Part shown: positions 8,721 through 43,970 of the stretch, one piece after another
Numbering within the stretch: the first letter of the stretch is position 1
Layout: every line of letters begins with the position of its first letter
Source of the DNA: Girardia tigrina
Taxonomy: Eukaryota
Length of the DNA stretch: 50,860 bases
Reading direction: 5' to 3'
Assembly: GCA_001938485.1 (NCBI GenBank)
Contig: MQRK01225506.1
Span: forward strand, 90,835-141,694
Program-made: the position numbers and the translations under genes
Notes under the pieces: generated by a model
What the model saw: the letters and a program-made list of their open reading frames with translations, nothing else
Database searches by the model: none
What the model was told of the DNA's origin: nothing

Positions 8721-10432
8721 TATTTATATACCATCAACTTTTTTAGGAGTCACCGTTTTAACCTTTACGCCCTGAATTAATTTCTAAAACTTAAAATTAT
8801 GAATTATTTCTAATTTGTCTAGTAAGTGGTAAATAGATAATACTTTTTTTAATAGATAATAGTATATGTACTAGATCAAATATATGACACAACAGTCACA
8901 ATTGCTTCTTCGGCTCACACACATAATTACACTCGGTATAATCTTTGTTTTTCTGTGACGAATTTTATACAGTTGTGCGTCAAGATTAATACTTTTATCA
9001 CATTGTAAAAATTAATTGTAAAATCCAGTATCCTGTACGTTTTTATATGACACAGTTTTACAGTATTGGTTTACTCGTCTGTGTATGATAAAAATCTGTC
9101 AGATGTTATTTCTATCATGTCACATGTTTTATAAACCAATTAAAATATTGATTATCGAAACCAGTGATTCCAAACCTGGGTGCCGCGAGCGTCTGAAAAG
9201 GGTGCCGCGAGCTCGTGAGATGTACGAAATTATAAAATAATAAAATATGTATTACACATAAATATATAGTATATAAAAATATAAATAAATGAAAAAATGA
9301 AAATGTACAAAAAATGTTAAAAATATAGAATTGCTAAATAATAAATCCCTAATATGTGCATGTCGTCAGAATGTTCAGTGCATTGAATGGTAGGAGCATA
9401 GTGTATACCACGACAGCGACTGTTAGTTATGCTTATATCGACATTCGTAATAAAAGTTTTTTTTTAAAAACAATAATATAAATATTTATTGATGACATTT
9501 CAAACAAATGTTCATCTACCATTTTCATTTCCCTCATATCCAAACTTTTACAATTTCAATTAACTTTTATATATTGGAAGAACCGCGTTGCAAAAAGTTG
9601 CCATTTCTGCAACTTTTTCGGTTGCCCTATTTATAACTCTAATAAATTTCAATACAAATATTTATGTAATCACTTTTAAAAAATTTATAAGCTCAAAATG
9701 ATTTTTTATGTTATTACTTAAAAAAATATATCTCAATTAAATTTTATATGTAAATACTTTTAAAAATTTTACAAATTTTGAATTATTTAAATCTCAGCAT
9801 TTCAGCGAAACGATAAATGAACTATATTCTCATAGCTACATAAATTCTACAAAAAATATTAGATATGGTGAAAATCTCAGCAATTATTACTTGTTTGTTT
9901 TAATACACAAATATAGCCGTATATCTTGAAATTTTTGTACTTTTTTTGTATCTTTATAGCTGGTGAGCTTATTTGACAATTTATGTTAGAATTTATTAAT
10001 AAATAACTCTTAGGTAAAATGAATAAATTTCTAAATCGAAAAAGAACTGCAGAATATATCAAAGTTTCTAAATATGAGACTCCAACAAACTCTAAAAAAA
10101 GTAAAATTCGTCAGTACCAAGATAAATTTTTAGACTTAGAATTTACATGGTGGGGGACAAACTTTACCCAAAACCTAAATGCATTGTATGTGGAGAAGTG
10201 TTCTCAAATGAAGCAATGAATCCCAGTATATTAAAGAGACACTACTACGAAACATAAATCTTTGTTAAATGAACCACCACAATATTTTAAAAATTTGTTG
10301 AAGTCACAAAAACAACAAAGTAGAATGTTCGTTAAGAAAGTAACTATAAGTGACAAAATTCAAGAAGCCAGTTATATAAGGCAGAACTAATAGCGAAAAA
10401 TATGAAGCCTCATAATATTGGAGAAACATTAA

Positions 10433-10649
10433 CCCTTAATAACCTAAAGTTTCAATTTTGATACCAATCTTTTAAACGTTCTTTATGGCGATAATGTCTG
10501 AAGTATCAAAATTGATACCTGTTTTTTTCTAAATACATATGTAAAATAAATATTGTGATTTTTTTAGCTACTTTTCCCTTCATCTAGACCCTCAAGCAAA
10601 CACAGTAATATTAAAAATAAATCACTTTCATAAATCAGGCTACTAAGGG
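10433..10649. mobile_element. piggyBac-type MITE (217 bp) inside the hAT transposase
   Basis: TTAA|CCCTTA...TAAGGG|TTAA with an internal inverted repeat (gtttcaattttgatac / gtatcaaaattgatac); precise excision restores the hAT reading frame. Confidence 0.85.
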
Positions 10650-10788
10650 TTAATACTTCCGGTTTGTTCGGCAATTGTTAAAACATTGTTTGAAATCGAG
10701 GCAGAAGAAGAAATAAAGAAAATTCCCTTGTCAAACAATACAGTAGACAGGCGTATTGATGATTTATCAGACAATATTGAAACACGCC

Positions 10789-11080
10789 TGTTAGGAACGA
10801 CATTGGTCGCATAAATGTCTCCTGTTTCTTCCGACATTCAAATAACAAAAGAAATAAGCCTGGATCAAAATAATTTATTAATCGACAACTTTTAAATTTT
10901 CCACAAAATTTCTGTTTATTTAAACAACTGAATTTATTTGAGGATATTTTTAGTATTTCTATTTTTAACCGTTTCTTATAAATATGGATATGGATATAAA
11001 TATAGATATTTAATAACATTAATAATTATTTAAATGTTGAGAATTAAAATATATTATAAATTATACTTACAAATCTTACA
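10789..11080 (-). repeat. 3' LTR of element B
   Basis: Direct repeat of 15527-15818, adjacent to the PPT. Confidence 0.97.
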
Positions 11081-14000
11081 TCCCCCCTTTTTTTAAGATT
11101 TTTATTTTTCTCAACCTTACGGGTGACTACTTTGTTGTCGGAGTTACGACGTATGTAGCTCCTATCGTGGATTTTGTCTATAATTGTATATGGACCTTCG
11201 TACTTGTCTTGGTGCTTGTCTCGAATCTCTTTCTTTATCCAAACCACCTCCCCTATCTGAAAATGTCGTCGTGTTTTTTCGGTGTTCTCTATTTGTTTCT
11301 CTCTAATTTTTTAATAATATCTGCCGTGGGTATCTTGTTCATTGGTAACCAACCCTAACGGTTAATCTGCCTTCCAAATACTACCTCTGCTGGACTGAAA
11401 CCTGTCGTTTTCTGTACTATGGCGTTCAAACTAAATTCTATTTCAGGAAGTAATGTAGCCCAATCTGCTTTGTCTCTGTCTTTCAGCGAAGCATTTATAT
11501 ATTCCCGTATCGTTCTGAATTGCCTTTCTATGATTCCGTTAGTATTATGGTGGTATGGGCTGGAAAATATTAAGGTAGTGCCTACTTCTGCCGCTAGGTC
11601 TGCCATCTTCTTAGATATGGAGCTCTTTCCACAATCCACATGTATTTCTTTAGGTGAGCCAAATTTCATAATCCAATTCTTATTGATGATGTTTACCATT
11701 GTGTTTTCTTCTTGCGTTGCGCATGCTGTCAGAACTATGTATTTACTGAAGTGATCAATAATAGGGATAATATATTTTTCCTTTTTCAAAGTTTCTCTAA
11801 AAGGCCCGCAGATGTCAATGTATATTTTCTCGAATGGTTTATCTGACTGTATCTTTATTGTTTTTTCTTTCGTTTGTGTTGTCAGGGTTTTTATCTGTTG
11901 GCATGAAATACAGCCTTCAATTGTATATTTTACGGCTTTCCCCTTGCATTCATGTCGAAATTGTTCTTGATGTATTTGTCAGTTTTTTCCGCACCTGCAT
12001 GACATAATAATTTATGGATGTGTGTAATAAATTCTGTTTTCTTGTTATCTGGTATACATATCTTTCCGTCTTCCGTATATACTGTTCCATTCTTGACGAT
12101 AAACTGTCCCCCGTCTACTGACTCCTTAATCATCTCGATATCCTTGTCATTTTCCTACCAGTATGAGATCGTTTTTATTGGAGACATCGTTAATATTCGT
12201 GTTTTCATTTTGTGTTTCTTGACGTCTTCATGCTCCATCAAACATTGTGTACACATACCACAATCTTTTCTTGACAACATGTCCGCGTTTCCGTGTTGTG
12301 AACCTTTCCTGAATCGCATGTCAATGTCTAAACTGCTGAGGTAGTTGAGCCAAGTCTGAAACTGTGCCGTGATCGGTTTCTTTGTATTCATCATAGACGT
12401 TATAGCCTTGTGGTCCGTCCTAAGGACGAATCGTTTCCCGTACAGATAATGCTTGAAATGATCACAAAAATAGTATACAGCCAGAAGTTTTTTTCTGGTT
12501 ATGTAATATCCTTTCTCATGGCTATTCATCGCTTTCGACCCGTACGCGATCACGAATTCCCTTCCTCAAACATCCGTTTGAGATAGTACCGCCCCAATGG
12601 TATCGAAGCTGGCGCCAGTGTCTAATATGAATTCTTTCCTAAAATCTGGGAACGTCAGTATCGGGGCTTCCATTAAAGCTTTCTTCATTTCGTCAAAAGC
12701 TGTCTCACAGGTATCTGTCCAGACTAGTTTCGCCTGATTATTCCCACACATACTTTCCAGGGTTCTGGATTTTCTGGCATAGTTTTTAATGAATCTTCTG
12801 TAGTAGTTACAGATTCCAAGAAAACTTCGAACACTTTTGATGTATTTAGGTCTGGTGAACGTTCTGATGTCCCAGAAATTTGACTTCTTTTCTCAGGAAT
12901 TTGCACTTCTCGGGATTCAAACGGAGTCACCCGTCGCCAACTCTCTTGATAACTTCTTCTAGGACTGTATAGTGTTCGTCTAAAGTCTCGGTGGCCACTA
13001 AAATGTTATCTAAGCATACTGATGCCCCACTCTTTATAGTTGCGAGTATTTTCGTCATAACTTCTTGAAATGTACCGGGGGCCGCCGCTATTCCAAATGG
13101 CATTCTTGTGAAACAAAATTGGCCCGATTTTGTCGAAAAGGCTGTTTTTTCTTGTGACTCCGGGTCTAGTTCGATCTGATAAAATGTGTTAATCAAGTCT
13201 ATTGTACTGAAATACTTTGTCCCGTGTAAGGTATCCATCATTTCTTCCGCATTGGGCATGTGAAAGGCTTGTCTTTCAGTAATTTGATTTAACTGTCGGA
13301 AGTCTAAACATAATCTCACGTCTGCACTTTCTTTCTTCCACACGCATACTAATGGTGTATTCCAAGGGGAGTTACACTTCCGAATGATTCCATTGTCGAA
13401 CAGATTTTTGATTGTTTCTTCTATTTTACCTTCTAAATGCATCGGTTGTCTCCAAGGTTTCATATTTATGGGTCTACCATTGGTAACAATCTTATGAGTT
13501 ATTAGTTTTGTACATCCTATATCCCATTTATTCGCCATGAAAACACCCATGTCTCTGGAAATTATATCCATCAATCGAGGAGACTTCTCCAGGTCATAGA
13601 GACTTCTCCATAGTCATCCTTATTTTTTCCATTCTGTCCTCATTCGTTATTCTCTGTCCGAATTTAGCCTCAATGTTGCAAATAAATTCCTCTGGTTTGT
13701 CAAGTGTTATGTCAATCCATTGTAATTCGAGACCCAGTTGTCTCTGCATATCAATTCCAGCAATCACTGCTGGGCTAATATTCTTTACCACCACAAATAT
13801 AATTTTCGCTTCTCTTTTGCCAATCGACACTTCTAATTCCCCTTTCCCTAACACTTCTAATTTACTGTCATTCGCACATCTTAACTTGTCGGTTGACGGT
13901 TCTATCTTTGCACCTGGTATGCGGTTAGCTATATCCGCACCCATGACATTGACACTCGCACTCGTATCCAATAAACAATCCACATACATGCCGTGAATAT

Positions 14001-14220
14001 TCACATTTAAGCTCGGTTTCCCTTGCATTTTTTCGTACGATATAATCTCCGTGGTCCTAGTTCCCAGTGTTTTATCTGTTGTCCTGATTTCGCAGATTCC
14101 GTTTGTCTCTATTTTCTTAAAAAAATTAACAATTTTAATTTCTTCCTGACGTGTTTCTTTTTTCTGTAAATCATTATCATTGCGGTCTTTCATCGGTCCT
14201 ATATCGTTTTTCATATCCAC
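11044..14220 (-). pseudogene. pol: pol of element B (PR-RT-RNase H-IN), fragmented
   Basis: ORF pieces 13594-14220, 12927-13574, 12566-12751, 12155-12553, 11930-12133, 11355-11789 and 11044-11247 carry the canonical motifs in order. Confidence 0.95.
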
Positions 14221-14375
14221 ATTATGATTAACATTATTACGTAACTCTTTATAATCTTTATTAAAATTATTTACAAAATTACTTTTATTATACTTGCCAA
14301 TTGTACTATCAGCTACATGATTATTATAAATAGAAAATATACTACTATAACATGAACGGTTAGAAATAGAATTAC

Positions 14376-15575
14376 CTACTGCATGGCTCCGATTGACTCC
14401 TCTACAGTCGGGCCGTGACCGTTTGGGCTATCGGTGTCGCGATCGTCGTTTCGAGCTTCCTCCATCTCGATCAAGGCAATTTCTTTTCCTCTCCTGAATC
14501 CTCTCTCATAATCATTTTCCGGATATCGTCTTCCACTGTTATACATTTCCTCATTCTGTCTGTGACGATTCGGGCAATCTGTGAAATTCTTTCTTCGATC
14601 TCTGTTCGAATACATCGGCTGGTTGTTCAACTCTGACTCTCTGTACCATGGAGTTTCACGCCTTCTTGTTAGGTTTGGGTAGCAGTCATTCGTATTGTGG
14701 CCATTTGTTCCACACCTTGAGAATTTGATTAAACAATTCCGTCTGATATGACCGGTCCTTCCGCATCCGTAGTAAATTTGAGTCTTCCGTGTGGGGCAAT
14801 TTTTGCTCAGGTGGCTGGTTGAATTGCAAGTCCAGCATTTTCTTGTTTCTCTCGGACTTTGCCTCGTTAAATGACCGGCTTCGGATGGTTGCCTCTTATT
14901 CGGTGGGTGATTCTGAAGTACATTGCTGTATGACCGTCGGGCATATGGTCCGTATTCTTCCGTATATCTCATTTTCACCGCCTTATCTTCGCCCATCGCA
15001 TTGATTTTGTTGTATTTCTTTTGGATTATATCCATTTTTTTCATTGTTTCTTTGATATCTCCCATTTCTTTTTTATCGCTCATTTCAACTTCTTTTATAA
15101 TTTCTTTATCGTCCAGACAATGTTGCAGGATTTCTTTCTCCAGCTCTTCTTCATTCCATTTGTATGACGCCAATTTTGCTGCAAATATTTTGATATTTTT
15201 GAAATAATCTTCTAAATAATTTTAAAATAATTTAATCCCGTCGATAATCTAATATTTCCACCATATCTTTAAATCTAGAATTTTTTTTGTGAATGCTTTC
15301 CGCAATTTGTCATCGAAATTTTTTATATTTACGTCGACTTCTTCGTATATTTTAATTGATTCGTCATCCAATAGAGTCTTCACAAGGATAGCTTTCATGC
15401 TCTCTCTGGTGTTCGTCAGCTCGAAGAATCGCTTGCATTTGGTGATGAATAATTCCACATCTTCGCCTTTTGTGTACCACTCTGGAATTGCTCTGGCCAG
15501 GAGTATTTCCGAGGTCTTGGTCGCCATGTTAGGAACGACATTGGTCGCATAAATGTCTCCTGTTTCTTCCGACAT
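14376..15575 (-). pseudogene. gag: gag of element B (frameshifted)
   Basis: ORFs 15249-15575 and 14376-15173; knuckles CWTCNSTSHLSKNC, YGCGRTGHIRRNC and SRCGTNGHNTNDC. Confidence 0.9.
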
Positions 15576-15818
15576 TCAAATAACAAAAGAAATAAGCCTG
15601 GATCAAAATAATTTATTAATCGACAACTTTTAAATTTTCTACAAAATTTCTGTTTATTTAAACAACTGAATTTATTTGAGGATATTTTTAGTATTTCTAT
15701 TTTTAACCGTTTCTTATAAATATGGATATGGATATAAATATAGATATTTAATAACATTAATAATTATTTAAATGTTGAGAATTAAAATATCTTATAAAAT
15801 ATACTTACAAATCTTACA
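15527..15818 (-). repeat. 5' LTR of element B
   Basis: Direct repeat of 10789-11080, immediately followed on the minus strand by PBS TGGCGACC. Confidence 0.97.
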
Positions 15819-17243
15819 ACGCCTATTAAATAAAATTACTGTATCTAAATTATTTAGCTTGTAACTGGATGAATCGACAAATGTAGTAGGAAAAGCACAT
15901 TTACTTGTTTTTATTCGTTTCATTGAAGAAAATAAAATTGTGGAAGATTTGTTACGCTATAACCAATTTGGTAAAACTACTACAGGAAAAGATGTTTTTG
16001 ACATAATGGATACATATTTTAGATCTGTTGGATTATCAGGTATCTGATGGTGTACTGATGGTGTATCTTCCATGGTAGGTTACTTCAAAGGATTTATATC
16101 GTATGCTAAAAGACAAAATGAAAATATCATACTGACTCATTGTTTTACTCATCGCGAAGCTCTACTAGCAACAACAATGGGATCTGAACTCAAACAATTT
16201 TTGGATGAAGTGATTAAAGTGGTTACTTATATAAAAAGCAGGCCACTTAAATCGAGGATTTTTGAACATCTATGTGAAGAAATGGTAAATCAAAAGAGAC
16301 GCTTAATTTTTCATACGGAAATAAGATGGCTTTCTAAAAGTCGCGTTTTGAATCGCTTCTTCGAATTAAAGAAAGAAATTGAAGAATTTTTTCACCGAGA
16401 AGACAGAAAAGAGAAAATAAGAGAAAAAAATTAAGAAATACAAAAAAAAACAGAAAAAAAACAAATTATTAGAAAATCAATTATGGTGTTTAAAAGTTTC
16501 ACATTTGACAGACTTATTTGGTCATTTAAATGCACTTAATTTAAGCATGCAAGACAAACATAAAAATATTATGTCTTCTACAGATAAAATTAAAACCTTT
16601 CAAGCTCAAATAAGAGAAGACAACATAAGTATGTTCGTAAAAGTTGCGGAAAGTAAAACTGAAACATTGCATTTCCTGCTATGATTGGATACGTAATCCT
16701 TTTGTTGAATTTATTCATGATTTAAATCTTTCGTAAAAAGAGGAATTATTAAGTTTTCGTAATGATCGTTCACTGCGACTTAAACATTCTGAAATTTATA
16801 TTGATTCGTTTTGGGTAGATATTCGAAAAAAAATATGTAAATATAGGGGAAAGAGCTTGCAAAATTCTATTTTCTACTTCGTATTTATATGAAGCAGGAT
16901 TTTCTGCTCTCATAAACATAAAAACAAAAAAGTGCAAGACTCAATTCTGTTGAAAATGAATTGAGAATACGTCTCTCAAATATTAGACCTGACATTGACA
17001 CATTAGTTGCAAATCACCAAGGTCAAGTGTCTCATTAGTAATTGTGAAGAACCGAAAGTGTCTTCACTTTTTAAAATAAAAAAACCGAGAATAATATTTC
17101 CAAAATATATTTCCAACGTCTAACAATTTAACATTTTATTTCGTCAATTTGTTAATCGATTTAATTNNNNNNNNNNNNNNNNNNNNNNNNNNNNNNNNNN
17201 NNNNNNNNNNNNNNNNNNNNNNNNNNNNNNNNGTTACGTTGTT

Positions 17244-17589
17244 TCAAACAATTTGAAAATTATGTTCGAATCTTGATTTGATTTTGTTACGGAATTCGTT
17301 ATTTAAATGTGTGAAATCAATTTCCTCAAATGGTTTTTTTGCACAAAATCTGTTTCGTTTCTGATTTACAATTGTTTTGATGCCATTTATGATCAAAAGG
17401 AATGAATTTTTTTGATTTTTCACAATTTTGTATGGTCCGTCGAATCTGCCAGTTATGTTATCTCGGACTAAAGCTCTAAAGTCAGAGAAAGTATTTGTAA
17501 ATGTTTCATTGATTTCCTCAGTTAACAATTTGTTGATGTTCTTAATTTGACCTACGGAAGTGATGTTGTTAACGTGATTTTGTTTTTTT
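17244..17589 (-). pseudogene. Integrase C-terminal (GPY/F) remnant of the boule-carrying element
   Basis: ALVRDNITGRFDGPYKIVKNQKNSFLLIINGIKTIVN lies just upstream of the 3' LTR. Confidence 0.7.
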
Positions 17590-17807
17590 NNNNNNNNNNN
17601 NNNNNNNNNNNNNNNNNNNNNNNNNNNNNNNNNNNNNNNNNNNNNNNNNNNNNNNNNNNNNNNNNNNNNNNNNNNNNNNNNNNNNNNNNNNNNNNNNNNN
17701 NNNNNNNNNNNNNNNNNNNNNNNNNNNNNNNNNNNNNNNNNNNNNNNNNNNNNNNNNNNNNNNNNNNNNNNNNNNNNNNNNNNNNNNNNNNNNNNNNNNN
17801 NNNNNNN

Positions 17808-19000
17808 AAGTTTTAACGTCATTTTGAGAAATATGTAGAATTTCGTGTCTTGGAGTCATTGGACTCAACAAATGTGTTGTGGTAGGTGTTACATTAGGAG
17901 GAGAAAGATTCTGGGATTTTGTAGTAGACATCCCCTCTAATGTTTGAGCAGTCGTATTAGAACTATTATTACTAGAAGATTGCAAAGGAGATTGAGGAGC
18001 TGCTGTTAATCCAGCTAATGTAACACATGGTGTTGCAGTGGTCGAATCAGNNNNNNNNNNNNNNNNNNNNNNNNNNNNNNNNNNNNNNNNNNNNNNNNNN
18101 GTCTAGTTTGTAGAGATGCCACTTGTTGTGCATAATTAGGGTTAGGAATTACGGCAGCAGGAATTTGATGAACGTACTGAGGTTGCGGTAAATACATCGT
18201 TGTGGTCGATTGAGGTAACGTCATAGTTGCATATTGTGGAGACAACACTGTGAAATTGCACAGGAACCTGACATAAAAATGATCCATTTTGCAAAGCATA
18301 TGGAACTAGTCCATTATATGAAACTGTTCCAGAAATTTCTTGTCGAGGATATAAATGTTTCTTTCTTACAGCTTGTTTAATGTTTAATTTTCTCTCTTTA
18401 AAGATCAATGTTTCAGATTCATTCTTGGTGAGATTTTCAGCAATTTCTTCATTTTCAAAAGTCACAAATCCATAGCTTCTTTTCGATAATCCCGTACGAT
18501 CATTTATTATATTTGCGTATTTAATTGGACCATAATGTGAAAAGAAAATTTTCAAAAGTCACAAATCCATAGCTTCTTTTCTATAATCCCGTACGATCAT
18601 TTATTATATTTGCGTATTTAATTGGACCATAATTCGAAAAGAAAATTTTTAATTCGTCCTCAGTTGTATTTGATGTGAGTCCACCCACAAAAATTCTGTT
18701 TGGTATAAGTGTACCAATTTTCGGTATTGATACATGAGAAACAGAATTGAGCTGATTTATTTGATTGATCTTGTTATGCTTCACTTTCTTTATAGTTTTA
18801 GAAATTCCCAATGCCAATAAAGAGTATTCAATATTTTTTTGTACATCGAAAAGCAGTCTTTCCATAACGTTTAATAGAAAATTGTATTTTATGTTCAACT
18901 GCGATAAATTATCTTGTTGATCTTGATATATGGATAATACTTCCTGGATTAACTGATTGAAATTTTTTTTTGAAGAACTTTTCTTTTTTAATAGAGGCAT
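17808..19000 (-). pseudogene. boule: Intronless boule (DAZ-family RRM) copy fused behind an ~85-aa non-Boule N-terminus
   Basis: PKIGTLIPNRIFVGGLTSNTTEDELKIFFSNYGPIKYANIINDRTGLSKRSYGFVTFENEEIAENL...LIFKERKLNIKQAVRKK matches the Boule RRM signature (GTVIPNRIFVGG...DRAGVSKGYGFVTF...KKLNIGPAIRKQ), followed by P/Q/Y-rich and S/T/P-rich tails. Disrupted by a 97-bp tandem duplication, a TAG at 18581-18583 and a frameshift near 18260. Confidence 0.88.
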
Positions 19001-19020
19001 CTTCTTTTTTCTTTTTTTTT

Positions 19021-19032
19021 CTTCTGACACCA
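19021..19032 (-). promoter_or_regulatory. Primer-binding site complementary to the tRNA-Leu(CAA) 3' end
   Basis: TGGTGTCAGAAG lies 2 nt after the LTR-terminal CA and is complementary to ...CUUCUGACACCA. Confidence 0.85.
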
Positions 19033-19219
19033 ATTGTGAAGAACCGAAAGTGTCTTCACTTTTTAAAATAAAAAAACCGAGAATAATATTTCCAAAATAT
19101 ATTTCCAACGTCTAACAATTTAACATTTTATTTCGTCAATTTGTTAATCGATTTAATTATATTATAGGAATTAAATCCTATATAAATTAAATCACTACAG
19201 TAATTATTAATAATAATTT

Positions 19220-21813
19220 TGGTGGATACGTCTATCCAGAGTCCATCTTTAATTTTGCTTGTTTTTTGTGATGGTTGATGGTAGTTACTGATAGTTGGGT
19301 CAGGTTCTTGGTTCAGGATTAATTCTTTTTTAGGAGATATGAAAGAGGTCTTTTTAATCTTCTTCATATTGTCTAGATAAAAAATCAGCAACTATGTTTT
19401 CAGAACCGCTGGTATAATTGATATGAAAGTTGAACTGAGACAAGAATTGAATCCAACGCAATTGTCGATTTGATGGGTTTTTCATAGAATTTAGACAGAG
19501 TAATGGTTTGTGATCGGCTTTTACTTAGAACTTGGAGCTTCCGAGGTGGTATTTGAAGTGTTTCACTTCGATGACTATCGATAGCAGTTCCCGATCGACA
19601 TTGGAATATTTACTTTCTGTGGTCGAGAATGTCCTAGAGAAGAATTATGCTGGCTTCAGTTTGCCACTGGAGTCACTATGGTTAAGGCTACTACCTACTG
19701 CTGTGACTGAGGCATCTGTGCACAGAATGAAAGAGTCGTTGTTGTCCGGTGGGTATCTTGGCTTGATATTTCTAACTTAAGTTATGGCTTCTTCATGAGT
19801 GTTCTCCCAGACGAATTTTGTCCGATGATTCTTGACTGTCAGCTCGCATAAAGGAACCAGTGTTTCAGAAAGGTTTTGAATAAGCCTGTGGTAGAAAGTG
19901 ATAGCTCCGATAAATCGTAAGAGAATCTTCAAGTGGGAGGACTAGACCAAATATTAAACGTGTTTTGTTGTAAAGGTTCAATTCCAGCTGGTGTGATTTT
20001 GAAACATAAAAACTCAATTTCGCGGATTTTCCGGCATTATTTGCTTGAGTTGATTCTCAATTTGGTGACTTGTAAGCATTGCATAAATTCTTGAACGTGT
20101 TTTTGATGATCTTGTTCGTTTCGGGAGAAGATAAAGATGTTATCAATGTACACTAGAGCATATGATTAGCAAACACGTAACAATGTATCCATTAGCCGTT
20201 AAAAGCTTTAAGCGGCATTCCGCAAACCTAATGGCATGAAATTGTATTCGAACAGCCAAATGGTGTGATTACTGCGGTCTAGTGTTTATCCTTTTCTTCT
20301 AATGAAACTTGGTGATATGCTTTTTCGACATCAATACTGGAGAAAATCTGACAATTTGTGACTTAGTCCCGAATATCGGTTAAGCTCGGTAATGTTAATC
20401 GGCATGGTCTGCTTTTTCCGTTGAGTACTCTGTTGTCGCCACATGGGCGGAAAGAGCAGTCTCTCTTTTTGACTATGACTAATGCAAAAGACCAGTCACT
20501 TTTCCTTTCACGGATTATTCCTCTCTGGAGAAATTCAGTGAATTGTTTTCGGACGTTTTCTAGGATCATTTTTTCCATTCTTCGGGCTTTCTAATTAATT
20601 GGTTGACCTGTAGTAGCAATGTTCCGAACAGGTAATGTTGATATATGATTGATTTGGGCAGGGCTTTGGAGTAAAATATTGTGGCAAACGATGAGGAGCT
20701 CGTGGGCTGCCAGGAAATGAGAATCAAGTATAGATCGGCGGACGTCTGCAAACAGTAATACCGTCGAAGCATAGTTATACGAAATTTTTATAATTTTTCT
20801 CCGTATACCTTTATTGAGGTGTTATTGGTTGAGATTAGTTCTCTTCGAGTGATTTGTGAATCTTGTTGAAACATTTGGGCTGGTAGCACACTGATGTCTA
20901 CTCTTGAATCGATTAAAAAATTAAAAGATACTTTTCCGGATGTGGCATGTACTGATAATATGGCGTTGAAATTAGCTTATGGCGGTTTTACCTGTGAGAA
21001 ATCGTGTATCGGGGGTTGATAATTAAATTTTGGGACCTCTATATTCGACTTTACAGGGTCTCTTTTCCTTTTCCCAACGGTTTGGAATTTGGCCATGAGC
21101 ATGGTTTTAGTCATTTTTGCATTATGTCCAAATTTATGATGACAGCATCACACTGGTTGACTGTCTAACGGTGAATTACATATATATTTCTTGAGACAGT
21201 TCAATTCTTTCTTCATATCTTCAAGATCGCATGGAAGTGGTTGACTTAGCGGTTCGATCCCGTATAACTGATCCATTTCGATGGAGATATAAAGGTCTGC
21301 TTTGGAAGCCAAATCATCTAGTTGATATGGTTCATAGACAATTAGATGACATCTGATATGTGGGTAAAAAATCCAGAAATTGATGTCTAAGTAATTCGCA
21401 TGCATTCAAAGGAAGTTGTCGGTCTCAAGACTTTGGGGCACTGTTTCAGCTCTTCGAGTAATCAGGGAAGGTTTGATGTGTCGGTCCGTTTTGAGCTGGG
21501 TAATTTCCCGCAGAGCTTGTTGAAATTCTTGATGAATGCCATTTTGAGTTTGTTGGACGGTACTGAGTAAGTTTAGATCCATAGCCGAAGAAACAGAGTC
21601 CAATGTTTATGGCAGAAGATTTGTTAATAAGTGGAAAGGATTGGTCTTCTGATTTGTAATATTCGTCAATTTAAAGTCAGCTTCCACTTGAGAAATCCAT
21701 TTGGCTGGGTTTTTGAAGAAAGAAGGAATGTTAACCTGAATGTGGTTGTTCTCAGCTACGCTTCTGACACCATTGTGGAAGATTTTATCTTTATTTAAAC
21801 AATTTGAACTCAT
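19220..21813 (-). mobile_element. Decayed Ty3/Gypsy internal region (element C: gag-PR-RT-RNase H), no LTRs seen
   Basis: Gag IPSFFKNPAKWISQVEADFKLTNIT; knuckle CCHHKFGHNA; protease FLIDSRVDISVLP; RT WSFALVIVKKRDCSFRPCGDNRVLN, MPLGLRNA, YIDNI; RNase H DASVTAVG, DRELL, TDHKPL, NIVADFLSR. Truncated before the integrase core. Confidence 0.88.
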
Positions 21814-22246
21814 TGAGTAATCAACAATAAGACACTTTTTCAAATTTTATTTTTGTTTTTAAAACATTACATTTAAACAACATAATTATTAATATTTTTT
21901 AATATATTTAATTTAAATAAGTAGGTGTTAAATATGCCTACAAAATCTTTTTAAGCTATTTAGATTTAATCATAGTTTTCCTAAATATTCTGTGTTCGAT
22001 ACCGACTCTTTTTGTTTTGGCTTCAACATCTTTTCTATCAATGGACGATGCACCTCATGATGTTCTGTTAAGAACAAATCATGATATAAATTGTAAAATA
22101 ATAAATGGTTACTCAATATATATATATATATATATACAGTCAGGTGCAAAAGTTTGTGAACGCTTGTTGTTAAATTGTTTTTTGCACCCAACTGCAATTA
22201 TATTGACAAAAGCACACCAAAATACAAAGATTTTATTAGAACATTA

Positions 22247-24533
22247 TGTCACGACCCACTTGTTCGCAGCAGTTTTGCAAGCTCAGAGCCCCCAGTGACT
22301 GTTAAAGGTCAGCCACAACCCTATTTGAACTTATATTATCTATAGGTTGTTTTTAATATTCATTTAAACACTAGACTTATTTATGGGTCGGACGCCTCTT
22401 CTTGCTCGACATCTGTCTAGCAGTGCCGAGTCTGAAGGGCCTGCGGGTTCGGTTCAAGACGGGACGGGCTATGGGCCCCCCGCCTAGCGGAGCGTCGCTC
22501 GGGGATGATTTTATTCGAGTTAGAACTCTTAGCATTTACTATTACGTGTATTATGTAATGTAGAACTTACGGCAGTGTTGTGTTTGAATGTGACTTATTG
22601 CGTTTGTATGTTGTGTCTTTACTAACTTGTGGCACTGTGTATGTTGTTGCGTAACTAGAAGAAGTATATCATATAAGAGTCACTATTAATGATCATTATA
22701 TTATCAGGAGACCCATAATCGACAACAGCTCTAACGTATCCTACTCCCATGTCTATGTCGCCTATATCAGACAATATAACTCAACTTAACCCGTTACGGA
22801 TTCGCAATTCGCTAAATTCTTTTCGCTAGTCTATTTTCTGTCCTATTTCTTTTGGGGAAATTATCCATATATGAATCCTTCAACACTCAAGGATTCCCCT
22901 TTAAAATGGGCCTCGGGTTAAACAATTGCTCGAGATATATTAATTATGATTATAGAATGAACTTCGGGGTGAATTTTGAAATTTTATTTCAAAGCGTAGG
23001 ATTCTGATAATAATATAAGAAAANNNNNNNNNNNNNNNNNNNNNNNNNNNNNNNNNNNNNNNNNNNNNNNNNNNNNNNNNNNNNNNNNNNNNNNNNNNNN
23101 NNNNNNNNNNNNNNNNNNNNNNNNNNNNNNNNNNNNNNNNNNNNNNNNNNNNNNNNNNNNNNNNNNNNNAAAAAACTTTCAAAATTAAAATTAAAATAAA
23201 TCATGAGTTCCAAAAATTGCATAAATCAAATTATCGTTTTCCGGAATAAAATTTAGAATATCACTTAAAACTAAATTATCGCTTAAAATAAAATGAGTAA
23301 CAACATTATAAAAAAATAATTTGTATTTATTTAAATAATAACAATGTTGTTCTTATTCAAATTTCCCGATAAACATTCGTCAGTGTTTCTGGAAATGACT
23401 CGTAAATCGGTCGCCAAGGACCGTTTTGCGGCTCCAACCGATCGAAAACGGAGGCCCCGGAAATACCCTCCGAAAAAGCCATGTCTGATATCGATGAGAC
23501 ATACACGATCACCGGGACNNCGTGGTCTCGCTCGGGCGCTGATACTTCAGCGATCTGTAACCGATCCTGTGACATTCTGGAGGCGGGCGACGGCGACGGT
23601 GGACGTTCCACTAAAGCTCTAAAGGTAAACTATACTACCCTCTCTAATTTAACCGAATCGGGTTTTGCCGTTATTATTTAGTATCGTAAAAAATGCGTAT
23701 AATTTAAATATTAAATTAACACATGAAATGTAAATATATATTTGAAGAATAATAAGGAAATTTACATTTAAAATTACTCTCGATATAGTCGCGTTGGATT
23801 CTCCAGAGGAATATTCTTCGGCCGTTAAATATAATATGTTTTTTTTGTCTGCTTTATTGTCGTTTTGTGTGAACTTTTGTGTTTTTAACTGTTTCTTTTA
23901 TAGTTGCAGGACGACACACCGGCTCCAGATTCCACCAATGGTCGGGATGGTCTGGTTTTTTCGGATTCCCGATTGGATGGCCAAGTATGTAGGTCGTTTA
24001 AATTTTTGATATTTTCGTTTTCATTATAGGATTCACTGCCCGTGTGCCGACCTACATCTGCATGTGATGCATCGGCATGCGGTCAATTAAGGGCATTGCT
24101 GTTATTTTTAGCTCCGAGGGTACGTTTTTTAATTAGTCTTTGTTATTTGTATATTAATTTTTGATTCTTTGCAGGGTTATATCTCTTTATCCAAAGGTCA
24201 CATGAAGATGCGGTTTCTCGTCCTCGATATAGTCCTTATCCAAATCTATACGGGGAGGGTTTGCTAATCAATTTCGACCACCGGGTAAGTTTTGGCGTAA
24301 CGTTATATGTTTTGTTCCTTTATGTGGTTGTTTTTAGTCTCATTGCAATGCCCACAATGTTCTGTCGGACCGCTGGGGTGTCAGGGACCATTCCAGGATC
24401 TCGGTGCTCGCTCAGCGACCCATTGTCATGTATTGTGTCAAGCTCATCAAAGAAATGTATTATACCAACTTCTCGTTTCTTCTTTCTTTTGTTATGCATG
24501 TGTATGTTAATAAATATATTTTGGACCGTAACA
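22247..24533 (+). mobile_element. Long solo-LTR-like insertion (TGTCACG...CGTAACA) within the Tc1 element
   Basis: LTR-type inverted termini; AATAAA at 24509-24514 near the 3' end; sits between the Tc1 TIR and the Tc1 stop codon. TSD imperfect (ttat) and there is an internal N gap. Confidence 0.5.
23395..24510 (+). pseudogene. Multi-exon gene or pseudogene of unknown function inside the LTR-like insertion
   Basis: GC-richer exons separated by AT-rich GT-AG introns at 23625-23903, 23985-24029, 24120-24174 and 24285-24337; basic RKRRPRK N-terminus and a Cys/His-rich last exon. Confidence 0.5.
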
Positions 24534-42118: not shown

Positions 42119-42288
42119 ATAAATTTAACAACCATTTTTGATTTATTTCGATGAAAGTATTTGTCGATGAAATTCGTTATAGTATATATTATATTATCGA
42201 TTAATGGTTTAATTTTAATGGTTATAAATTATTTTTTATGGATTTCAATTCGACGAAAGAATAAAAAAAAATTTCAGTGAAAGTTATA

Positions 42289-43147
42289 CAGTGCGGTTCA
42301 TAAGTAAGTTCGCACCCTAACAATTTCAATATTTCTCAATAAAACGATGAAAAAGTCTTTATTATTTTAATTGCATTGTTTAAAATGATTAAAATTGATC
42401 ATAATCTTGTATTTAATTTAAATATTTATAGATTAATTTCATATTTGATGTTNNNNNNNNNNNNNNNNNNNNNNNNNNNNNNNNNNNNNNNNNNNNNNNN
42501 NNNNNNNNNNNNNNNNNNNNNNNNNNNNNNNNNNNNNNNNNNNNNNNNNNNNNNNNNNNNNNNNNNNNNNNNNNNNNNNNNNNNNNNNNNNNNNNNNNNN
42601 NNNNNNNNNNNNNNNNNNNNNNNNNNNNNNNNNNNNNNNNNNNNNNNNNNNNNNNNNNNNNNNNNNNNNNNNNNNNNNNNNNNNNNNNNNNNNNNNNNNN
42701 NNNNNNNNNNNNNNNNNNNNNNNNNNNNNNNNNNNNNNNNNNNNNNNNNNNNNNNNNNNNNNNNNNNNNNNNNNNNNNNNNNNNNNNNNNNNNNNNNNNN
42801 NNNNNNNNNNNNNNNNNNNNNNNNNNNNNNNNNNNNNNNNNNNNNNNNNNNNNNNNNNNNNNNNNNNNNNNNNNNNNNNNNNNNNNNNNNNNNNNNNNNN
42901 NNNNNNNNNNNNNNNNNNNNNNNNNNNNNNNNNNNNNNNNNNNNNNNNNNNNNNNNNNNNNNNNNNNNNNNNNNNNNNNNNNNNNNNNNNNNNNNNNNNN
43001 NNNNNNNNNNNNNNNNNNNNNNNNNNNNNNNNNNNGATCAATTTTAATCATTTTAAACAATGCAATTAAAATAATAAAGACTTTTTCATCGTTTTATTGA
43101 GATATATTGAAATTGTTAGGGTGCGAACTTACTTATGAACCGCACTG
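42289..43147. mobile_element. Tc1/mariner-type element with long TIRs (interior in gap)
   Basis: TA|CAGTGCGGTTC; inverted repeat of at least 112 bp (42289-42400 vs 43036-43147) with one mismatch; TA duplication. Confidence 0.9.
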
Positions 43148-43229
43148 TATATACCTTACTCCTTTATGATTTTAACTATATATTACTTAATAATGAACTT
43201 TATGTAATTATTATTGAACTTTATTACAA

Positions 43230-43970
43230 CATAAAGGAAACTACAACAGAAGGAAAAAGTGGAGAAAATGAAAATAAAAATATAATTGAAACAAAGCGAA
43301 TATTTCAGGTCGCAGATAAAGTCTTGATAAAGAAAGTTAACCCATCAAAAGATGATGACCGTTATATGGGACCAGCTAAAATTATAAAGCAAAGACACGA
43401 TAGAAGTTATGAGATACAACTAGAGGACGGCAGAATCTTGATCAGAAATGTAGAATGGCTAAAGCCATTTAAACCGAGGGGGATGTGAGGAATATTTTAA
43501 ATTGTTTGAATGTGTATATGTATGGATGCTGTACGTTGATTTAAGTATGTTGAATTTAGAATTGTGATTCTCCCACCCAGATGGAAATTGGTATATTTAA
43601 AAAATATTTAGCATTTAAATTTAAAGTCATTGATTATTCGAAGATAATTAAAAAAATCATTTGTTAAGTTTATATTTTTGATTTCATAATTAAAATTAAG
43701 TTTAATAATTTTTAGTAAAATTTAAATTGAATGCATTTTTTATAATTTGATGACATTTTCATTATTTTGGGATTTATTAAGAAATTGTAAAAATTATTAT
43801 TTTTTAATTAATATTTTTAGAGGTTAAATATTTTAAAAAATAACTTAGAAAATTATTCGAATAATTACGATTAAAAACAGAAATAAGAAAGCCAATTAGA
43901 AGGATGACAAACGATGAAAGACTTTCTGAGAGTCATAATGACTCTAAATGTGATTGTAATAAAAATTCAA
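43230..43970 (+). mobile_element. 3' end of a Gypsy element: integrase tail, PPT and 3' LTR
   Basis: FQVADKVLIK...RYMGPAKIIKQRHDRSY...RNVEWLK is similar to the element B tail; PPT gaggggga is followed by TGTGAGG at 43484. Confidence 0.8.

Follow-up and report, generated by a model that had tools for sequence, protein, structure and literature searches.

A probable family of non-autonomous Gypsy-type retroelements with a captured boule1 segment in planarian-like flatworms

Can a small LTR retroelement take up part of a germ-cell RNA-binding protein and continue to move with it as a unit? This question is raised by a locus on the reverse strand of a contig from Girardia tigrina (MQRK01225506.1, positions 90,835 to 141,694, of assembly GCA_001938485.1). 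The whole stretch of 50,860 nucleotides that was analyzed is here referred to as the window, and the locus occupies window positions 17043-19199. A first-pass annotation had described the locus as a Gypsy element with a boule payload. We conclude that it is very probably a copy of a non-autonomous Ty3/Gypsy-type family from a planarian-like flatworm, which captured boule1 and was mobilized in trans. The features of the element and its neighbors are listed in Table 1.

Table 1. Positions in the window of the parts of the element and of the sequences that surround it.
Feature	Position	Strand	Description
5' LTR	19035-19199	-	165 nt, TG..CA ends; hairpin predicted at the U5 end, just before the PBS
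3' LTR, readable part	17043-17166	-	124 nt, 100% identical to the 5' LTR; then runs into a gap
Left TSD copy, GTAAT	17038-17042		Overlaps stop codons of the hAT-type remnant
Right TSD copy, GTAAT	19200-19204		Perfect match to the left copy
PBS, TGGTGTCAGAAG	19021-19032	-	12 nt, complementary to the tRNA-Leu 3' end; two bases from the LTR
Putative boule1-derived intron-free segment	17808-18724	-	RRM and Q/P/S-rich tail; enters gap 17590-17807, 3' junction hidden
RRM domain	18358-18694	-	RNP2 and RNP1 present; tandem duplication inside
N-terminal domain, element-derived	18734-19000	-	89 residues; gag-like by position only; 90-95% common to boule-less P0047
Putative integrase C-terminal (GPY, SH3-like) tail, element-derived	17247-17588	-	Predicted fold, weak alignments
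Single fusion reading frame, broken	17244-19000	-	Two frameshifts in readable sequence, plus gaps 17590-17807 and 18051-18100
Assembly gap	17167-17232		Spans the remainder of the 3' LTR and the site of the polypurine tract in relatives
Older Gypsy neighbor	19205-21942	-	5' LTR 21773-21942, same PBS 21761-21772, protease-RT-RNase H; no integrase or 3' LTR
Degenerate hAT-type transposase remnant	10019-17040	+	Split by a complete Gypsy element, 10789-15823

The outline of the element is given by a direct repeat, in which window positions 17040-17166 match 19032-19158 at 100%, and this comparison agrees with the earlier description of a 165-bp LTR with a second copy identical over the 124 visible bp. 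The perfect GTAAT target-site duplication was also recovered, and a 5-nt match between the flanks is expected by chance with a probability of about 0.002 at the local base composition, according to our own arithmetic. Likewise, the primer-binding site had been assigned to tRNA-Leu, and its 12 nt are identical to the Leu-tRNA site printed for the retroelement Steamer (PMC8905726); a probe complementary to mouse tRNA-Leu(CAA) begins with the same 12 nt (PMC7997516). The 12-mer occurs as two exact copies in the window, as compared with 0.11 expected by chance if one mismatch is allowed, and no tRNA genes or Rfam families were found in the window. A purine run stands directly before the LTR in two relatives that are described below (L003 and L004), and the corresponding place in the window lies under the gap at 17167-17232. 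Window 17043-19199 is confirmed to be a real copy of an LTR retroelement.

Neither RT and RNase H, as had been reported, nor an integrase core was detected between the LTRs in searches with Pfam and tblastn, and the interior leaves no space for these domains because it spans only about 1.8 kb. Since protease, RT, RNase H and integrase core are all absent between the LTRs, the element is non-autonomous. No autonomous partner sharing the LTR was found, and the nearest RT-bearing relative is L008/P0131, with 56-68% identity to the gag and protease of the gag-protease protein P0007. The older Gypsy element to the right of the locus was considered as a partner and rejected, as its LTR is unrelated except at the ends, it is devoid of an integrase and its proteins are about 40% identical to those of the relatives of the family. 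No related element was identified elsewhere in the window by tblastn with the N-terminal piece and the tail.

The interior had been described as boule placed between the primer-binding site and an integrase tail. Boule is indeed present there, but the frame is broken and its first 89 residues are element sequence rather than boule. Both readable halves of the RRM are recognized by Pfam RRM_1, and among solved structures DAZL is the best match to each half. All named best matches of the intact relative P0010 are boule proteins, and in an RRM tree that had no genuine Musashi or hnRNP outgroup the chimeras form the sister group of Boule1 of Schmidtea mediterranea, with 89% and 83% identity. For Boule2 the identity is just 56%. 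The RRM matches and the tree support the assignment of the payload to the DAZ family, as proposed, and point specifically to the boule1 type. The tail of the payload is homologous to the tails of the flatworm boule proteins P0011 and P0034. The RRM is 73-89% identical to that of Schmidtea mediterranea Boule1 (UniProt A0A172RVQ0, P0002) and the tail is homologous to those of boule1-type models (P0011), whereas the element differs from Boule1 in lacking its first ~45 and last ~100 residues as well as its introns, and in being fused to element pieces.

The claim that the payload is intronless was substantiated by a boule gene from another flatworm (L002), which has two introns within the RRM, both of which are absent from the element. 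Small insertions are found at the two intron positions in the Schmidtea-type gene models P0003 and P0011. These observations support a spliced mRNA as the probable source of the payload, with the parental introns being seen in another flatworm and presumed for the source species.

The payload is flanked by protein pieces of a different origin. For the N-terminal piece, there was no Pfam match and no detectable homologue outside the family. Pfam also gave no match for the tail, which the first-pass annotation had called an integrase GPY tail. An AlphaFold model of the tail has pLDDT values of 75-87 in the core, and its top Foldseek matches are retroviral integrase C-terminal domains (E 4e-4, target TM 0.7-0.8). 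The tail aligns weakly to rve-bearing Gypsy polyproteins, every time within their last 60-100 residues. Even without a Pfam match, the predicted fold and the position-consistent similarity to Gypsy proteins agree with the annotation and support the interpretation that the tail is an integrase C-terminal domain. The same tail ends P0007, the gag and protease of which match Ty3/Gypsy polyproteins, and by way of this common tail the element-derived parts appear to be of Ty3/Gypsy descent. We also considered whether planarian Boule might naturally end in this tail, which was ruled out because P0047 and P0007, neither of which contains boule, terminate in it as well, and the C-terminus of boule1-type proteins is a different one.

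The homologous stretches of the reading frame in the window copy contain no internal stop, and one of the two frameshifts was created by a short tandem duplication in the RRM-coding part. The units of this duplication differ at 3 of 97 positions, as compared with 0 of 124 in the LTRs, which hints that the copy was broken before it moved or, alternatively, that the assembly has mixed two family members. The flanks of all three gaps keep the order and strand of the ungapped relatives: those of gap 18051-18100 align collinearly to L001 and to the P0011 tail, which is of the boule1 type, gap 17590-17807 separates the boule tail from the integrase-like tail, an order also seen in P0010, and at gap 17167-17232 the tail is followed by the LTR with a spacing that resembles L003. 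The continuity of the frame across the gaps cannot be judged because the N counts are estimates, and the pieces on either side of a frameshift were used as separate queries in the searches. The LTRs are identical and the target-site duplication is intact, and the insertion in the window is therefore recent; as read from its sequence, this recently inserted copy appears incapable of encoding the full protein.

Three chimeric copies are known, two of which (L001 and L003) come from short flankless contigs of JGI samples, possibly from other species. Two of the three copies are broken and L003 is intact. L001 is 93% identical to the window from inside the LTR through the primer-binding site into the RRM. 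L003 consists of a primer-binding site, a leader, an intact frame of 452 aa (P0010), a purine run and an LTR of ~165 nt, after which the primer-binding site is found again; the fusion frame ends at the polypurine tract and the LTR, and the LTR is 85% identical to that of the window. The 5' fusion point and three bridging residues are common to the window copy, L001 and L003. The idea of a family that moves as a unit is supported by L001 and L003, both of which share the junctions from the LTR through the primer-binding site and the N-terminal piece to boule, and L003 additionally carries the end that runs from boule through the tail and the polypurine tract to the LTR. A boule-less sister element (L004/P0047) has the primer-binding site, leader and N-terminal piece in common with the chimeras (92% at the nucleotide level) and a tail of the same kind, with a zinc knuckle at the position of the RRM, and its purine run and LTR start are the same as in the family. 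Scans of JGI metagenome contigs with P0010 recovered only an unrelated RRM, and viral contigs yielded no match.

The RRMs of L001 and L003 differ with a dN of 0.070 and a dS of 0.713, corresponding to a ratio of 0.10 over 83 codons, and the dS for the N-terminal piece of the same pair is 0.074, all as computed on contiguous aligned ranges. With a dN/dS of 0.10 at a dS of 0.71, the capture must be old and the RRM has been kept by selection. The earlier suggestion that the chimera was mobilized recently consequently holds for the insertion of the window copy, but not for the capture.

How could such an element have arisen? The ancestor was probably already shortened and similar to L004, in that a gag-side piece at its N-terminus was followed by a zinc knuckle, some filler sequence and the C-terminal tail of an integrase. 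A fragment of a spliced boule1 mRNA would then have been gained by two template switches during reverse transcription, that is, by LTR-mediated retroposition, with the boule piece placed exactly at the position occupied by the zinc knuckle in the sister element. The product would have been a single in-frame protein composed of the N-terminal piece of the element, the Boule RRM and tail, and the integrase C-terminal domain. The chimera would have retained the parts needed in cis, namely the LTRs, the tRNA-Leu primer-binding site, the polypurine tract, the leader and both ends of the coding region, and may therefore have gone through repeated rounds of copying by enzymes that an autonomous relative supplied. 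The lineages would have diverged, with the RRM being under purifying selection meanwhile. This scenario retains the capture of boule from the first-pass proposal of a Gypsy element that swapped most of gag-pol for boule, but the donor had probably lost much of its length beforehand. It is tempting to speculate that, in a gag-like protein, the Boule RRM took over RNA binding from a zinc knuckle of the nucleocapsid type, or that it links the element RNA to germ-cell translation, and that selection on germline spread kept the RRM, although we consider such a role for the fusion protein unlikely.

The same observations could be accounted for in other ways. The intact 452-aa frame of L003, the strong purifying selection on the RRM and the small number of copies in very large databases are what might be expected of a domesticated host gene, in which case the fusion was fixed in planarians and retained because it serves the host, the LTRs are leftovers and the window copy is a decayed paralogue. 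This is quite improbable given that the LTRs of the window copy are identical over 124 nt, next to an intact target-site duplication and primer-binding site, that the LTR, primer-binding site and purine run have been retained in L001, L003 and L004, that two of the three copies are broken and that the boule-less sister has the same ends. Yet another concern is that different repeats were joined across the gaps and that the element and its duplication are not real at this locus. The 2.2 kb of the locus contain three gaps, the left contig stops inside the LTR, and the 3 mismatches in the tandem duplication could reflect two merged family members. Furthermore, the flanks are two different and unrelated older elements: on the left the copy adjoins stop codons of the hAT remnant, and on the right it adjoins a Gypsy element at its broken end. 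Such mixed flanks fit a simple insertion only if a junction pre-existed there. However, independent contigs from other datasets repeat the order of the parts across each gap and the junctions, the two LTR parts are 100% identical as compared with a difference of about 15% in other family members, and the match of the 5-bp flanks is hardly a matter of chance. An assembly artefact is in our view very improbable.

Least probable of all is that boule1 was captured independently or repeatedly by related elements, rather than once by a chimera that then spread. The tenfold difference in dS between the N-terminal piece and the RRM of a single pair of copies is suggestive of such a history, as is the finding that the RRM of L003 has a higher identity to Schmidtea Boule1 (89%) than to L001 (83%). 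Against it, all copies have the fusion point at the 5' side and the three bridging residues in common, and the mosaic of ages is more simply explained by recombination between co-packaged RNAs or by an RNA-level constraint on the 5' region. We therefore favor a single capture followed by the spread of the chimera.

LTR-mediated retroposition and secondary retroposition have precedents in animals (Tan et al., 2016, Genome Res, PMC5131818). In these retrocopies, an intron-free copy of a host mRNA is situated inside a discontinuous LTR element on the same strand, where it can be in frame, and secondary retroposition has occurred in a few cases. The boule chimera differs in being a diverged family with an old capture, long-term purifying selection on the RRM and both fusion points in frame with protein pieces of the element. 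Bs1 is also a low-copy LTR element that has no enzymes of its own and in which fragments of host genes are part of a hybrid reading frame, but it is copia-like, comes from a plant and contains parts of three genes, whereas the boule element is an animal Gypsy-type element with a single germline RNA-binding gene. In replication-defective transducing retroviruses, the viral genes have mostly been replaced by spliced host sequence that is fused in frame to gag, and replication depends on a helper. The in-frame fusion of a gag-side piece to host sequence and the need for a helper make these viruses similar to the boule element by analogy of architecture only; the boule element has no envelope, and nothing points to infection or to an effect on the host.

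Steamer, a Gypsy element with short LTRs and a tRNA-Leu primer-binding site whose sequence relationship was compared at the PBS, has an LTR of 177 nt as compared with 165 nt and the same LTR start, TGTA, but it is an autonomous element (gag-pol) from bivalves (PMC8905726). Elements of the LARD/TRIM type, such as ta-TRIM from cestodes (PMC4558846), are likewise small, flanked by LTRs with a primer-binding site, without RT and copied in trans, but TRIMs are non-coding and the boule family has retained a long reading frame. The literature searched contained no account of a planarian retroelement that carries boule. LTR-mediated retroposition with secondary spread is hence known, and it is the payload and the long-conserved in-frame fusion that are new.

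Documented LTR captures of host mRNAs are mostly single, young and decaying copies. The boule case differs in that a key germ-cell RNA-binding protein was captured, that it is fused in frame to element pieces on both sides, and that purifying selection persisted as the unit diversified and continued to insert. If selection works via the element, this would be a natural example of a mobile element that borrowed a germline regulator, and if it works via the host, a new boule-derived gene would have been born on a retroelement. On a practical note, planarian boule1 probes, RNAi triggers and read mapping may also match the element copies.

The first-pass annotation had read the element at 17043-19199 (minus strand) as a small LTR retroelement with a boule-derived payload. 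That observation is confirmed and its interpretation is supported, with four refinements: codon comparisons date the boule capture as old and show the RRM to be under selection, the fusion keeps the reading frame, and the window copy is broken. Elements of this kind are already known; what is new is the boule payload, the double in-frame fusion and the long conservation in a mobile family.

Features of the element, its parts and its flanks (window positions unless a contig is named)
Feature	Position	Strand	Remarks
5' LTR	19035-19199	minus	165 nt, TG..CA ends
3' LTR, readable part	17043-17166	minus	124 nt, then gap 17167-17232
Primer-binding site (PBS)	19021-19032	minus	TGGTGTCAGAAG, 2 bases past LTR
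Predicted U5 hairpin	19035-19060; L001:38-60; L003:61-83, 1652-1675	minus (window)	
Single fusion frame	17244-19000	minus	between PBS and 3' LTR; broken in window copy
N-terminal piece	18734-19000	minus	element-derived
Boule-derived piece	18724 to at least 17808	minus	
Tail (C-terminal piece)	17247-17588	minus	element-derived
Neighbouring Gypsy	19205-21942	minus	protease-RT-RNase H; no integrase, no 3' LTR
Neighbouring Gypsy 5' LTR	21773-21942	minus	
Neighbouring Gypsy tRNA-Leu PBS	21761-21772	minus	same 12 nt
hAT-type transposase remnant	10019-17040	plus	degenerate
Complete Gypsy splitting hAT-type remnant	10789-15823	minus	297-nt LTRs, 98% identical

Positions 17040-17166 and 19032-19158 are identical without a mismatch, including 124 of 124 readable nucleotides of the 3' LTR, and GTAAT immediately flanks both LTRs on the outer side as a target-site duplication (chance of such a flank match at this site ~0.002). 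The Leu-tRNA PBS of the bivalve Steamer elements is exactly the same 12 nt (PMC8905726), and a mouse probe complementary to tRNA-Leu(CAA) begins with them (PMC7997516). One further copy in the window adjoins the neighbouring Gypsy LTR, where 0.11 matches would be expected by chance in the window with one mismatch allowed. The LTR pair, the duplication and the tRNA-Leu PBS were thus all borne out. The left GTAAT copy overlaps the stop codons of the hAT-type remnant, itself split by a Gypsy with gag, protease, RT, RNase H and integrase frames, and the right copy touches the neighbouring Gypsy at its broken end, where its integrase ought to start; the element thus either lies on a junction or created it. 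In every LTR end of the family, the U5 end is predicted to fold into a 7-9 bp hairpin immediately ahead of the PBS. At one end in L003, an outside contig with a chimeric relative, the stem letters are changed and the pairing is retained; single-sequence z-scores were not significant.

Both RRM pieces of the window copy, whose frame pieces were searched separately without joining, matched Pfam RRM_1, and the best solved structure for both was DAZL (E ~1e-8, compared with ~3e-4 for Musashi). The named best matches of P0010, the 452-aa protein of L003, were all boule or boule-like. In a neighbour-joining tree of the RRM, for which the solved-structure ranking was used in place of a true Musashi or hnRNP outgroup, both intact RRMs from chimeras were sister to Schmidtea Boule1 (89% and 83% identity), within the flatworm boule group and far from Boule2. 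The post-RRM tail is homologous to the boule1-type tails of two flatworm proteins (P0011 and P0034) until ~100 residues short of their ends, and the first ~45 residues of Boule1 are missing from the boule-derived piece. Furthermore, the flatworm boule gene on contig L002 has two introns within the RRM, whereas the element has none. Schmidtea-type gene models contain small insertions at both intron sites and at one more place, which we infer to be mis-spliced intron ends. Thus, both the boule identity of the RRM and the intronless payload hold. As for the deposited Schmidtea mediterranea Boule1 (P0002; UniProt A0A172RVQ0, 154 aa), the 19 residues at its C-terminus resemble an alternative frame, and the stretch giving them is read differently in other flatworm boule proteins and in P0010; the entry may represent a truncation through a frame change, or a short isoform.

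The C-terminal piece had no Pfam match, and only two proteins among 1.84 billion representatives were matched, with P0010 and P0007 as their cluster mates. P0007 (679 aa) consists of a gag-like part, a knuckle, a DTG protease and low-complexity sequence, followed by the same tail at its end, and its gag and protease match Ty3/Gypsy polyproteins. An AlphaFold model from eight natural tails gave a small five-stranded barrel (core pLDDT 75-87), whose best matches among solved structures were all retroviral integrase C-terminal domains (E 4e-4, target-normalised TM 0.7-0.8). The tails also align weakly with full rve-core Gypsy polyproteins, always at their last 60-100 residues. Together, these lines identify the tail with fair confidence as an integrase C-terminal (GPY) domain, as had been proposed. 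The N-terminal piece is "gag-like" by position only, because homologues outside the family were not found.

The same fusion is present as one intact frame in P0010, and the 5' fusion point is common to all chimeras. Contig L001 (1087 bp) is 93% identical to the window from inside the LTR, across the PBS and N-terminal piece, into the RRM, and the match goes on through the tail. In L003, an LTR end, PBS, leader, the 452-aa frame, a purine run, LTR, PBS and the frame start again follow one another, so that the contig is a permuted or tandem assembly; its LTR (~165 nt) is 85% identical to the window LTR, and the stop codon of the frame falls in the opening bases of the LTR. A boule-less sister element on L004 has in common with the window the PBS, leader, N-terminal piece (92% of nucleotides), purine run and LTR start. 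Its protein P0047 (444 aa) has an N-terminal piece ~90% identical to that of the window and 95% to that of P0010, followed by a C-X2-H-X9-C-X3-C knuckle, a low-complexity stretch and a tail of the same type, without an RRM.

For the RRM part, the comparison of L001 with L003 gave dN 0.070 and dS 0.713 (ratio 0.10, 83 codons), which argues for an old capture and for maintenance of the RRM by selection. The N-terminal part gave a dS of 0.074, and either exchange among family members or constraint as RNA would account for the 5' region. The window tail is 38% identical to that of P0010, compared with 78-86% for the N-terminal piece and RRM, which points to a mosaic family history. The suggestion of a mobile chimeric unit is supported in that the same 5' junction recurs in L001 and L003, but the capture itself is old.

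The window copy has two frameshifts in readable sequence, one caused by a short tandem duplication within the RRM-coding part, and no internal stops in homologous stretches. The duplicated stretch is single in L001, which is broken elsewhere. The duplication units differ at 3/97 positions and the LTRs at 0/124; either the copy was already broken on moving, or two family members were merged by assembly. Two of the element's three gaps lie in the frame. Flanking letters of all three keep the order and strand of ungapped relatives, which supplied coordinates only, the gaps being left as N: gap 18051-18100 is spanned collinearly by L001 and the boule1-type tail of P0011, the boule tail and integrase-like tail on either side of gap 17590-17807 stand in the same order as in P0010, and gap 17167-17232 lies between frame end and LTR with a spacing near that of L003. 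Since N counts are estimates, frame continuity across the gaps cannot be judged.

The layout, as read from sequence, matches LTR-mediated retroposition, in which template switches between element RNA and host mRNA would occur during reverse transcription. This process is known across animals, with secondary retroposition in a few cases and maize Bs1 as a plant example (PMC5131818). The parts kept around boule would form the expected cis set, namely LTRs, PBS, leader and 5' coding region, 3' coding end and purine run, and the enzymes for copying would have to be supplied from elsewhere. Our search found no autonomous partner; the nearest RT-bearing relative, L008/P0131, shares its sample of origin with L004. 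The neighbouring Gypsy has the same PBS, but its LTR is unrelated and it lacks integrase. In an autonomous Gypsy relative, residues 127-195 of the gag frame (L007:3-1550, plus strand) match the Pfam ubiquitin family at 27.7 bits (cut-off 25.4), ahead of the DUF7041 gag domain; this may be another host-derived domain within gag.

The window is AT-rich (G+C ~30%) and unlike human sequence, contains nine N-runs and is rich in mobile-element remains; among named proteins, the best matches to it come from flatworms, including the planarian Schmidtea mediterranea, and no tRNA genes were found in it. A G+C-richer island at 22300-23700, with short Arg/Pro/Gly-rich frames and a 146-N gap inside, had no Rfam match. 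Finally, a 116-nt inverted repeat (42285-42400 and 43036-43151, 99% complementary) flanks a 583-N gap and is followed by an integrase-tail-like frame at 43135-43488.
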